Below, in pieces: positions 23,896 through 26,738 of a stretch of DNA of 64,000 nucleotides. Every line of letters starts with the position of its first letter. The first letter of the stretch is position 1. The translations under genes and the position numbers were made by a program. The stretch lies in sequence record OR496884.1; one strand, written 5' to 3'. The notes below the pieces were generated by a model. The model searched no databases and had not been told where the DNA came from. It worked only from the letters and a program-made list of their open reading frames with translations.

Positions 23896-24575
23896 GTGAG
23901 GACCCCTCCTAGTCCTCACTTTCATAATAGATATTTAAAATAAGTGTTTATTATGAAAGTCTACCTTCGCCAGACACTTGACTTTCAATCTCATTGTTTT
24001 ATCCCTTTCATAATAAAAGTGTGCATCCTTTCGCTACCGATGTGCACTTCTTAATGTATTCTTTGTCAGAGTTCATTAAGAAGCGTAACCTGTTGCGATT
24101 CATTGTCAAATCCTTATGCATGTACTAAGCTGAGGGAGAGGCTCGACTCCCTCATCTTCTTAATAAGTATTTTAATGAGTATTTATTAAGAAGGTCTTAC
24201 ATTGCGGTGATGCCTTCTTTGCATTCTTTTTCATTTCTTAGCCATTTTCAATTTTTCTGTATAAGCCAAATAGTATTTCTGTTTGGCTCTTTTTAATATC
24301 TATTTATTAAAGTGTATATTAAAAAGATAATTTAGGAGTCTTTGTGTTTTTCTTTGATTTAACAATAGGCTAGGACATGGCTGTTAAATCTTTCCTTTTG
24401 GCATAAAGACTCCGCTTCATTTGATCTAACTCACTTATACCACCTAAAGAGTTTACGAACCATATATTGGTCGACAGCTTAACTAAAGGTTAAAGATGTA
24501 GTTAAATCATTTTCTCCAGATTGTAAAGATCTGGATTTATTAAAAACATACTGTAAAAATATATAGTATGTAACA
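23896..24575 (+). ncRNA. putative structured ncRNA segment A (hairpin array)
   Basis: At least ten stems of 7-19 bp in succession; G-U pairs are valid only on the plus strand; no ORF over 61 aa. Confidence 0.6.
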
Positions 24576-24579
24576 AAAT

Positions 24580-24663
24580 GCGGGTATGGTGAAATCGGTA
24601 GACACAAGGGACTTAAAATCCCTCGCTTATGGCGTGCCAGTTCGATTCTGGCTATCCGCACCA
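24580..24663 (+). tRNA. tRNA-Leu (anticodon TAA)
   Basis: Acceptor GCGGGTA/TATCCGC, anticodon arm AGGGA-CTTAAAA-TCCCT, long variable arm, GTTCGATT T-loop, encoded CCA. Confidence 0.96.
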
Positions 24664-24674
24664 CTTTCGAATCC

Positions 24675-24950
24675 CCGAGACGGTTATCAGTAAGTCTATA
24701 AACGACTTGGTGCGGCTGATATACCGTTCTCGGCCCTATTAGAGTTAATCAGGTTCTTAACTTAAACAAACTGATGTTTGACTTAGGCGAAGAGGGCAAC
24801 TTGATTAGCTCAAACACATTTGGATCTATCTCACGAAATTGTCAAACTGACGTTTACAAGCAAGTCACTCCGACTCGAATTGGAACAGTTAATTGTAAAC
24901 AATTTATACGGGACTCAATAGTTCACCGTGACGACAAAGAGTGGATCCAA
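24675..24950 (+). ncRNA. putative structured ncRNA segment B (between tRNA-Leu and tRNA-Asn)
   Basis: Nested stems: 24675-24733 (16 bp, 2 bulges), 24742-24753/24800-24811, 24820-24826/24943-24949, 24852-24859/24893-24900. Confidence 0.55.
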
Positions 24951-24960
24951 TGTTATCTCT

Positions 24961-25036
24961 GGTTCCTTAGTTCAGTAGGTAGAACACCGGACTGTTAATC
25001 CGTATGTCACTGGTTCGATCCCAGTAGGAACCGCCA
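24961..25036 (+). tRNA. tRNA-Asn (anticodon GTT)
   Basis: 76 nt cloverleaf, GGTTCCT/AGGAACC acceptor, CTGTTAA anticodon loop, encoded CCA. Confidence 0.96.
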
Positions 25037-25041
25037 TATTT

Positions 25042-25118
25042 GAGGATGTAGTTCAGATGGTTAGAATACCAGCCTGTCACGTTGGTGGTCGCGGGTTCGA
25101 GTCCCGTCATCCTCGCCA
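25042..25118 (+). tRNA. tRNA-Asp (anticodon GTC)
   Basis: 77 nt cloverleaf, GAGGATG/CATCCTC acceptor, CTGTCAC anticodon loop, encoded CCA. Confidence 0.96.
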
Positions 25119-25120
25119 TA

Positions 25121-25266
25121 TTTCATTCCAGATTTATCTGGTTCATACATCGGTACCGTAAGGTATAACCAAATGCACCTAAGTTCATAACTGAATACGG
25201 TGACGGTTTACATGAAACGTTCTGAACGGAAACTAAGACGAACGACGTGTGTATGATAATATGAAA
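25121..25266 (+). ncRNA. putative structured ncRNA segment C
   Basis: Closing stems TTTCAT/ATGAAA and TCATACA/TGTATGA enclose ACCGTA/TACGGT and small hairpins. Confidence 0.45.
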
Positions 25267-25276
25267 GCGTATTAAT

Positions 25277-25354
25277 GAGAACTATAGACGTATGGAAAGT
25301 CGCCTAATATCACTTATAATTAGGATTGTCTTGGTTCGAATCCAAAAGTTCTCA
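25277..25354 (+). pseudogene. tRNA-like element with a 10-nt anticodon loop and no CCA
   Basis: Acceptor GAGAACT/AGTTCTC, GAC/GTC D-stem with GG in the loop, CTAAT-ATCACTTATA-ATTAG arm, TTGG-TTCGAAT-CCAA T-arm. Confidence 0.6.
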
Positions 25355-25360
25355 TCCCTC

Positions 25361-25785
25361 TTCCTTCTATCTGTGCATTCATCAGCCTCCGTTGTTTGCT
25401 CCTCCATTGTCATCGTCGTCAATACAGGTAGAAGGAAACTTATTTCGTTGTACCGTATCGCCCAAGCAGGTGGTTTAATACAACGAATAATCTTGCTTTC
25501 GAGCAAGATAAATTGAGTAACCGTGCTTAATGATAACGGCATCGTCTATGATGACTATCAAGATTGTTTTATAGATGTTGTAGGTTGCTGCCAGTGCCAA
25601 GAAGGTCTGGGGCATTAACGAGTACAAAAAGAAGCTCGACTACGGACTAAACACTTTAAGACATGAACACGGTAAGCCAAAGCTAGTCACTTTGGAAGTT
25701 GTTCAGCAATGTTCAGCCTATTATCCCTTTCAGGATCCTTTACCAAAGGCCACGGTGGGGTTACCTAAAAGAGATAATGGGAAGA
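25361..25785 (+). ncRNA. putative structured ncRNA segment D
   Basis: 14-bp stem around a C-rich loop, further hairpins including a TTCG-capped 8-bp stem, long-range pairings and a possible pseudoknot; ends before a terminator. Confidence 0.55.
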
Positions 25786-25806
25786 ATATTTATTTATATA
25801 ACAATA

Positions 25807-25845
25807 CCTACCTAATCCTAAACAGGATTAGGTAGGGTTTTTGTT
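25807..25845 (+). terminator. intrinsic terminator closing the tRNA/ncRNA locus
   Basis: CCTACCTAATCCT/AGGATTAGGTAGG followed by GTTTTTGTTTGTTT. Confidence 0.85.
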
Positions 25846-25889
25846 TGTTTAACGATATTTTGAACTAACCGAATTAAAAGGTCTTTATT

Positions 25890-26738
25890 ATGAATCTTAT
25901 TGATTTTTGTGTAGATCATGTTGTTAATGGTCCAAGTGACATCAGCGATTATTTATTAAAATTAGCATTTGATAATCCAAACAACTTAGGTGGGTTTGTT
26001 TGGGGAGATCAAAATACTGAATACAGTATTGAACAAGGCATTAGAGAAAAAGTCATTGTTAAGATGATAGCGCCTCTGTTAAATGTCCAAGGTGGACAAA
26101 CAGAAATTATTGATTTAAGTGGTGCACATATTAAAAATATGGCCGGTGGTAATATTCACGTAAACGTTCCCGACTTCTTAACAGGTGGAAGAAAAATACT
26201 TACCGTTCTGGAGGTTTATCCAGGTAGTTTAAACCGCGCTATAACGTCCAATGGTAACTTCACGGCATATAACTCATGCGAGAGTGCCGGTCAAATGGGA
26301 AATGCGTTAAATCGTGTTATGAACGGTTTAGACTCAGGTCAAGTACAACGTGTGTATACTCATTTTACCATGGTTGGGAATAATAGTTTTATTATTCGCT
26401 CTGCTGGCTCAGTGATGTTTAATTTAGTAGCAAAAGTTGTTTTGTCTTACGATGAACATTTTAGCGTAGTCCCACCGAAGATGTATTATGCTTTTGCAAA
26501 ATTAGTAGAACTGGGTGTTAAAAGTTATATTTATAAAAACTGCAGACGTGGTATGCAAGAAGCTGTTTCTCGTTTTGGTGTTTCTATAGATGACATTAGA
26601 GATGAGGTAATGGAATACCGAGACGCATCTAAAGATTTCAGAGATTATTTTGAAGAAGACATTCAAAAATACTTGGCTTATTCTGATGCTAAAGGTGTCT
26701 CGGATACTATTCGTCAAATTATGCCTCGTAGAAGATAA
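25890..26738 (+). CDS. conserved phiKZ-like protein, probable virion component
   Basis: 282-aa ORF; pattern SIEQGIREKVI...LNVQGG recalled from phiKZ-like core proteins (unverified). Confidence 0.65.
   Translation: MNLIDFCVDHVVNGPSDISDYLLKLAFDNPNNLGGFVWGDQNTEYSIEQGIREKVIVKMIAPLLNVQGGQTEIIDLSGAHIKNMAGGNIHVNVPDFLTGGRKILTVLEVYPGSLNRAITSNGNFTAYNSCESAGQMGNALNRVMNGLDSGQVQRVYTHFTMVGNNSFIIRSAGSVMFNLVAKVVLSYDEHFSVVPPKMYYAFAKLVELGVKSYIYKNCRRGMQEAVSRFGVSIDDIRDEVMEYRDASKDFRDYFEEDIQKYLAYSDAKGVSDTIRQIMPRRR

Follow-up and report, generated by a model that had tools for sequence, protein, structure and literature searches.

A conserved stem-loop RNA follows a tRNA-like element in the non-coding tRNA trailer of Aeromonas phage AerS_266

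We analyzed a window of 64,000 nucleotides (nt) from the genome of Aeromonas phage AerS_266, a phiKZ-like jumbo phage of the genus Chaoshanvirus (OR496884.1, 243,674 bp). Positions given below are those of the window and equal the record positions minus 124,000; bases 24500-26000 are 100% identical to the record. The paper describing AerS_266 assigned it to the phiKZ-like phages, documented chimallin, PhuZ and two multisubunit RNA polymerases, and reported three tRNAs and no other non-coding genes (PMC10673249). Behind the three tRNA genes, a gene-free trailer of 770 nt on the + strand extends to a terminator at 25807-25836. The stretch between tRNA-Asp and a virion-protein gene is unannotated in AerS_266. 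Within the trailer are a tRNA-like element and, directly after it, a hairpin (M3) that had been flagged from the sequence. The features of this non-coding unit and the gene that follows it are listed below.

24580-24663, + strand: tRNA-Leu gene, in the upstream part of the unit that contains the hairpin (24580-25118)
24742-24811, + strand: hairpin in the structured spacer that follows tRNA-Leu, in the same upstream part
24961-25036, + strand: tRNA-Asn gene, in the same upstream part
25042-25118, + strand: tRNA-Asp gene, the end of the upstream part
25119-25276, + strand: M1, a structured RNA module of ~160 nt between tRNA-Asp and the tRNA-like element
25277-25354, + strand: non-canonical tRNA-like element, detected with the Rfam tRNA model and with our model R1
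25355-25360, + strand: pyrimidine spacer UCCCUC (6 nt), a putative endonucleolytic 3′-processing site
25361-25437, + strand: the flagged hairpin M3, recognized by its fold and its conservation in five phages
25440-25490 and 25490-25509, + strand: two small hairpins directly 3′ of M3, both with compensatory changes in ZPAH34
~25670-25800, + strand: conserved 3′ structured domain of the trailer
25807-25846, + strand: intrinsic terminator (13-bp stem, then a T-run), which ends the non-coding unit
25890, + strand: start of the virion-protein gene

In the phiKZ-like phage records that we examined, the annotation of this locus contains no RNA genes besides tRNAs, and the papers on phiKZ, 201phi2-1 and AerS_266 do not mention an RNA at the hairpin locus. 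The 600-1,150 nt located 5′ of the virion gene and after the tRNA clusters are also nearly unannotated in OBP, N1M2, Yubaba, AH04 and pEt-SU. A search of IMG/VR with the neighbouring virion protein yielded four loci, none of which had the tRNA-like element or the hairpin.

Several other parts of the trailer are conserved as RNA structures. Module M1 has nhmmer matches in LAh10 and in Shewanella phage SXP01, and RNAalifold predicted 44 pairs for it, 12 of them with two-sided changes. The 3′ structured domain has nhmmer matches in CF8, PS1, AhC3_1 and LAh10 and contains covarying helices, and the terminator is kept in ZPAH34 and CF8. No promoter or terminator belonging to M3 itself was found flanking the hairpin. 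M3 does not resemble an intrinsic terminator, as the terminator scan was silent at this position, the loop is 47 nt long and there is no T-run. A sigma-70-like promoter match inside the tRNA-like element (25293-25320) is absent in ZPAH34 and LAh10 and was taken as chance.

We compared the locus with known RNA families. When positions 24000-26000 (at E <= 10) and the four related loci were searched with Rfam, nothing except tRNAs reached the gathering score. No Rfam model for GOLLD, ROOL or other large phage-associated RNAs matched at the locus, and there was no Rfam match to a sponge of the CsrB/RsmY/RsmZ type. A CRISPR repeat or a mimic of one was also considered and rejected: the match to CRISPR-DR47, on the minus strand, reached 16.9 bits (E = 8), below the gathering score of 39, and the element is single-copy.

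The original prediction had described M3 as a stem of 14 pairs, including one U.G wobble, formed by arms at 25361-25374 and 25424-25437, that encloses a loop of 49 nt, with CCTCC motifs in the loop at 25386-25390 and 25401-25405. Its coordinates, sequence and motifs are all correct. We found an extra closing G.U pair (25375/25423), so that the stem comprises 15 bp with two G.U pairs and the loop is 47 nt, of which 70% are pyrimidines, with CCUCC at 25386 and 25401. The + strand of M3 folds with a minimum free energy of -24 kcal/mol and z = -5.1, and none of 200 shuffled sequences folded as well; z for the minus strand is -2.9 to -3.5. The + strand folds better in all five homologues, with z scores of -5.1, -5.5, -4.3, -4.7 and -7.6, compared with -3.5, -1.8, -2.4, -1.1 and -3.4 on the minus strand. 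RNAalifold kept M3 as a separate helix. The bare geometry of the hairpin (at least 14 pairs with G.U allowed, and a loop of 25-75 nt) is not rare, as it occurs five times on the + strand of the window, versus 3.7 +/- 1.8 times in dinucleotide shuffles. Three of these five hairpins lie within the 2-kb non-coding tRNA locus. Geometry alone is thus insufficient, and M3 stands beyond chance because it is conserved.

Hairpins occur at the same position in ZPAH34, CF8, AhC3_1 and LAh10 (in the related loci, L002:3789-3865, L005:2179-2254, L010:2413-2493 and L004:3028-3096). D3 and D9 carry exactly the LAh10 sequence here, so they provide no further information. We counted stem pairs outward from the loop in a script-made table, as MAFFT misregistered the LAh10 stem. 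By this count, standard pairs form at 73 of the 73 stem positions across the five phages. The ZPAH34 trailer is 86% identical to that of AerS_266. The arms of its hairpin are 100% identical, whereas the loop is only ~75% identical and also has indels, indicating that the loop has evolved faster than its flanks. The CF8 hairpin is the same except for two single changes, which are switches between U.G and U-A and between C-G and U.G. As these changes make or unmake U.G wobbles, only + strand pairing is compatible with them. In AhC3_1 and LAh10, a hairpin of equal size with a different stem sequence lies at the corresponding position, and each differs from AerS_266 by eight two-sided changes. LAh10 and AerS_266 have the top three stem pairs and the first loop bases in common, which supports homology. 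In AerS_266, ZPAH34 and LAh10 the loop begins with YAUUCA, even though AerS_266 and LAh10 have different lower stems. These comparisons confirm that the flagged hairpin is a genuine conserved RNA stem-loop on the + strand.

We found no conserved ORF across the hairpin on either strand. The frame, start and length of the ORFs do not match among AerS_266, ZPAH34, CF8 and AhC3_1, which rules out a coding role for the region.

The loop is 39-53 nt long across the lineages. Pyrimidines make up a fraction of 0.70, 0.72, 0.69 and 0.74 of the loop in four of the phages and 0.51 in AhC3_1, and the background of the locus is ~0.52. The AhC3_1 loop is neither pyrimidine-rich nor unstructured, and the loops of both CF8 and AhC3_1 are unrelated to that of AerS_266. 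Three of the four lineages have kept a large, mostly open loop with ~70% pyrimidine, and selection has in every lineage preserved a long stem placed 3-6 nt behind a tRNA-shaped element.

That element comprises 78 nt in AerS_266, with a 7-bp acceptor stem, a T arm that carries GGTTCGAATCC, and a 6-bp anticodon-like stem closed by a 10-nt loop. Position 8 is A, so that U8 is missing. It has no encoded CCA and instead has UCC after the discriminator base (UCC or CCC across the copies), whereas the true tRNAs of the cluster encode CCA. With the loop size, A8 and the missing CCA, and with no call by ARAGORN, the element does not qualify as a canonical tRNA. Its Rfam tRNA score is 29.6 bits in AerS_266 (26 bits in another scan, with a gathering score of 29) and 38.2 bits in ZPAH34. 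We built a covariance model (R1) from four copies of the element and obtained matches in LAh10, AhC3_1, pAEv1810 and AVP1. Among the copies, covariation is seen in the acceptor and anticodon-like stems, and no variation in the D arm and T loop. No match to the tRNA-like pattern was found in IMG/VR. Five metagenome matches to the pattern were taken as chance, as none fits R1.

The "anticodon" loop is 9-11 nt long in most copies. The Ferozepurvirus copies have a 7-nt loop with CAT (ACCAUUA), and remnants of CUCAUAA are present in other copies. CF8 has a genuine tRNA-Met(CAT) in place of the element, followed by the same hairpin. The element at 25277-25354 is therefore derived from a tRNA with the anticodon CAT. 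The copies with a CAT loop and the CF8 tRNA-Met(CAT) indicate that the hairpin has stayed with a tRNA(CAT) gene through evolution, and that this gene became a non-decoding tRNA mimic in most lineages. M3 starts 6 nt past the discriminator base of the element in AerS_266, and the corresponding spacers are 3-6 nt long across the five phages.

CCUCC is the anti-Shine-Dalgarno (anti-SD) core of the 16S rRNA 3′ tail. The motif occurs twice in the AerS_266 loop, once in ZPAH34 and once in LAh10, where it is in the apical loop, and it is absent from CF8 and AhC3_1. The seed motif is thus not conserved throughout the homologues. The first AerS_266 copy is kept in ZPAH34 despite indels on either side, and the second is CCUCU there. 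In addition, the ZPAH34 loop carries UCACCUCC, which matches eight consecutive bases of the 16S rRNA tail, and the AerS_266 loop carries AUCA-G-CCUCC. Given the loop composition, the probability of two CCUCC motifs in AerS_266 is 0.011 and that of the motif in at least two of four independent lineages is 0.025. These statistics are modest: the phages are related, so that the counts are not independent, and several of the tests were framed after the data had been seen.

The predicted probability of being unpaired is 0.39 and 0.69 for the two motifs of AerS_266, 0.97 for that of LAh10 and 0.16 for that of ZPAH34. Across 15 non-coding stretches of these phages, CCTCC has a mean unpaired probability of 0.39, versus 0.148 for average 5-mers (Mann-Whitney p = 8e-4), and GGAGG is always paired (0.005). 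On the + strand, 29 CCTCC motifs were counted, versus 9 GGAGG. We counted 31 cases of CAT followed by an anti-SD motif versus 17.4 +/- 3.9 expected, a 1.8-fold excess over shuffles. We also paired the loop with the 442 SD-bearing starts of the phage. The mean duplex energy was -15.06, compared with -14.21 +/- 0.5 for shuffled loops, 4 of 100 of which reached the observed value. No mRNA target with extended complementarity was found in the phage genome. An RNA that binds every SD would also affect the phage's own mRNAs, which counts against an anti-SD function. The original prediction had offered a general anti-SD small RNA as one reading of M3. What stands of it is that CCUCC is present in the loop in two of the four lineages and tends to be unpaired across these loci; the other two lineages lack the motif, and no target was found. 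We regard this role as possible but weak.

The explanation that we tentatively prefer, as a possibility somewhat short of an even chance, is that M3 is a hairpin RNA freed by tRNA processing, stabilized by its stem and acting through its pyrimidine-rich loop. In this model, the phage tRNA genes would be transcribed together with a non-coding RNA on the + strand, of which M3 is one conserved module. Host tRNA-processing enzymes may recognize the tRNA-like element: RNase P would cut at its 5′ end, and either RNase Z/BN or RNase E would cut at its 3′ end, within the 3-6 nt spacer. The predicted product, ~80-90 nt in length, is a stem-loop RNA made stable by a long stem that would shield it from exonucleases. 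It would act through the pyrimidine-rich loop, whose ~47 nt are largely unpaired. The CCUCC displayed in the AerS_266/ZPAH34 and LAh10 lineages could then pair with purine-rich ribosome-binding sites in general, and not with one captured target. Transcription, processing and any action of M3 in trans are thus predictions of this model. Pairing with purine-rich ribosome-binding regions is the most plausible action of the loop, and protein binding is less plausible.

We rate as nearly equal an explanation in which only the stem matters, as a folding insulator, a block to 3′-5′ exonucleases or a device that positions the 3′ cleavage. CCUCC would then be a by-product of a pyrimidine-rich loop that has no partner in trans. 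Consistent with this, the stem is the sole feature common to all five phages, and the loop sequence, its internal folds and CCUCC are not kept. The faster evolution of the loop than of its flanks, the negative target search and the make-up of the trailer, a string of independent conserved helices, point the same way. On the other hand, a tetraloop would suffice for such a function, and every lineage has a loop of 39-53 nt. A stem-only role also does not account for the loops of three of the four independent lineages, in which pyrimidines make up ~70% (background 52%), for CCUCC above the expectation from loop composition, or for the YAUUCA loop start that AerS_266, ZPAH34 and LAh10 have in common despite differing lower stems.

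A less likely alternative is that the loop serves as a protein decoy or platform, which binds S1, Hfq, cold-shock proteins or a factor that recognizes the 16S tail, and either titrates or recruits it. The pyrimidine bias in three of four lineages, the resemblance of the ZPAH34 (UCACCUCC) and AerS_266 loops to the 16S tail, and the failure to find a base-pairing target would all fit a protein partner. However, no protein is implicated by the gene neighbourhood, and what resembles the 16S tail is a short sequence, present in just two close relatives. In a more far-reaching form of the model that we prefer, which we consider improbable, nucleus-forming Aeromonas jumbo phages would use a degenerate tRNA(CAT) as a processing handle for a loop that mimics the anti-SD tail of 16S rRNA. 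The loop would soak up SDs or a factor that recognizes the tail, and M3 would be one arm of a ~2 kb locus that reprograms translation initiation.

M3 is very unlikely to be an inverted repeat that acts at the DNA level (a MITE-like relic or a protein-binding palindrome) or a functionless chance hairpin. Hairpins of this geometry arise about 3.7 times per shuffled window, which speaks for chance formation. In contrast, the 77-mer occupies a single place in the 243,674-bp record (blastn), and this copy number, together with the compensated changes in the arms, led us to reject a MITE-like repeat. In two lineages, pairing has survived eight two-sided changes apiece. The pattern of wobbles is specific to one strand, and such hairpins cluster in the non-coding tRNA locus.

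The original prediction had also proposed that the loop was captured as an antisense copy of one particular gene junction, which it would silence. Its reading of the reverse complement is accurate, in that the minus strand of the AerS_266 loop has GGAGG, a 7-nt spacer and ATG, preceded by two stops. The proposal itself is not supported, as there is no conserved ORF, no matching junction was found and the loop diverges fast. By blastn, the 77-mer had no second match in the phage or in 50,697 phage records (E <= 10), and an 18-mer spanning the putative SD and start, with up to three mismatches allowed, had no match besides its own site in the complete AerS_266 genome. Among 185,579 GTDB genomes, one Coprococcus MAG contained a 20-mer of the putative junction, approximately the chance expectation. 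The best RNAduplex pairing with the 442 SD-bearing starts, at -32.2 kcal/mol, was reached by 19 of 100 shuffled loops. In ZPAH34, the spacing from CCUCC to CAU is 3 nt and indels break the supposed frame, and the CF8 and AhC3_1 loops are unrelated. We therefore consider a captured junction highly improbable.

The suggestion that the minus strand acts as a CsrA/RsmA sponge is hardly credible: the minus strand of the AerS_266 loop does have the three GGA motifs noted (the M3 loop has GGA on this strand only), but its fold is the weaker one in all five phages, the U.G wobbles of the stem become C.A mismatches on it, the CF8 loop has no GGA on it, known sponges have many more GGA sites, and it is the + strand that carries the tRNAs, the tRNA-like element and the terminator.

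In architecture, the nearest known counterparts are the TMERs of murine gammaherpesvirus 68, in which a tRNA-like part is followed by stem-loops that are freed by tRNase Z (PMC4838037). As in TMERs, a viral tRNA-like element that is not aminoacylated has a hairpin directly 3′ of it, in the case of M3 after a spacer of 3-6 nt in five phages. By analogy, the release of M3 may follow the same logic, and its processing is predicted on this basis. TMERs differ in that they belong to a eukaryotic virus, are Pol III transcripts and are processed by Dicer into miRNAs, whereas M3 has a bacterial host, lies in a polycistronic tRNA operon and has loops of 39-53 nt.

The closest bacterial precedent is 3′ETS-leuZ, the 3′ external transcribed spacer of the E. 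coli glyW-cysT-leuZ operon, which sponges small RNAs (10.1101/2021.04.25.441314; PMC6191717). It too is a functional RNA from the trailer directly after a tRNA in a bacterial tRNA operon, with a single-stranded pairing region. In contrast to M3, it extends to the terminator of its operon and has RyhB and RybB as pairing partners, and the two have no similarity in sequence or structure. M3 is internal, with ~400 nt of further structured RNA on its 3′ side, and has no known partner. The resemblance of M3 to TMERs and to 3′ETS-leuZ would be one of function, and does not imply membership of a family.

Two other kinds of RNA are comparable in part. The stable RNAs species 1 and 2 of phage T4 (rnaD and rnaC) are small, structured RNAs of unassigned function that are processed from the T4 tRNA cluster. 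Like M3, they lie within the tRNA gene cluster of a lytic phage; they have no detectable similarity to M3. T4 does not form a nucleus, and anti-SD loops are not known from its stable RNAs. RNAs of the RsaE/RoxS type present unpaired C/U-rich loop motifs that are complementary to SD sequences, and M3 likewise has a C/U-rich, SD-complementary motif in a hairpin loop. However, RsaE/RoxS-type RNAs are encoded by separate genes that have a promoter and a terminator of their own, and their motifs are strictly conserved, whereas M3 is embedded in a tRNA operon, has lost the motif in two of four lineages and has no Rfam match.

The apparently empty 770 nt after the AerS_266 tRNA genes are a chain of conserved RNA structures. 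Among them, a tRNA(CAT) gene has become a tRNA-shaped element that does not decode, and the hairpin is always found behind it. If M3 is only a processing or stability element, the annotation of the locus is corrected and a defined substrate for the maturation of a phage tRNA operon is at hand. If M3 is freed and acts through its loop, it would be a counterpart, in a virus of bacteria, of the tRNA-linked hairpin RNAs of herpesviruses. If so, it may represent an RNA route to the control of translation in phages that separate transcription from translation.

Structured elements were identified at several positions in the tRNA locus of Aeromonas phage AerS_266 and in its trailer, the gene-free plus-strand stretch that ends in a terminator:

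23898-23921, small hairpin with an 8-bp stem and the 8-nt loop CCCUCCUA
24742-24811, hairpin with a 14-bp stem and a 42-nt loop, between tRNA-Leu and tRNA-Asn
25119-25276, structured RNA module of ~160 nt, between tRNA-Asp and the tRNA-like element
25670-25800, 3′ domain of the trailer, with covarying helices such as CAGCCUAnnnn...nnnnUGGGAAG

The ~160-nt module has counterparts in LAh10 (L004:2396-2582) and Shewanella phage SXP01 (L003:2494-2651), each of which follows a tRNA. RNAalifold placed 44 pairs in the module, 12 of them with two-sided changes, and one stretch within it, CUGAACGGAAAC, is invariant. A search of Rfam with the module returned no match.

The loop CCCUCCUA of the small hairpin contains the anti-Shine-Dalgarno core, with a predicted probability of being unpaired of 0.99. 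Its version in ZPAH34 reads CACCUCCU, and AhC3_1 (L010:1245 and 1384) and AVP1 (L013:881-912) have similar ACCUCCUUA or CCUCCU motifs, also exposed. The 14-bp-stem hairpin, the loop of which is not pyrimidine-rich, is present with altered arms in ZPAH34 (L002:3243-3313) and CF8 (L005:1863-1943).

The 3′ domain of the trailer is kept in CF8, AhC3_1 and PS1, and weakly in LAh10; the terminator (25807-25836) follows it directly. Further downstream, at ~25853-25868 and ~30 nt before the start codon of the virion-protein gene, we found the motif CGAT(A/C)TTTTG(A/T)A. Alignments place it at the same position in CF8, AhC3_1, LAh10 and SXP01, with conservation across genera. It is a candidate phage promoter of this late gene.

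The same locus is sparsely annotated in related phages. In the N1M2, Yubaba, AH04, pEt-SU and OBP records, the 600-1,150 nt from the tRNA/glutaredoxin cluster to the same virion-protein gene carry little or no annotation. N1M2 carries a hypothetical minus-strand CDS (L015:2874-3386) in overlap with its tRNA-Met and with a region that folds strongly; this CDS may be spurious. Annotation is absent from the first 4 kb of the LAh10 locus (MK838116.1), including four tRNAs detected by ARAGORN and a glutaredoxin/thioredoxin-like ORF (L004:2683-2946) that is annotated in the D3 and D9 records.

In CF8, the position of the tRNA-like element (25277-25354) is occupied by a true tRNA-Met(CAT), and the ancestor of the element was a tRNA with anticodon CAT. 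Ferozepurvirus copies (L011:859-935 and, in AVP1, L013:1881-1957) retain the 7-nt loop ACCAUUA. Copies outside Ferozepurvirus have loops of 9-11 nt and lack CCA, and their stems covary. That the stems covary despite such loops and the missing CCA argues for upkeep of the element as a tRNA shape. On these comparisons, it is the shape of a tRNA that is maintained, and not a role in decoding.
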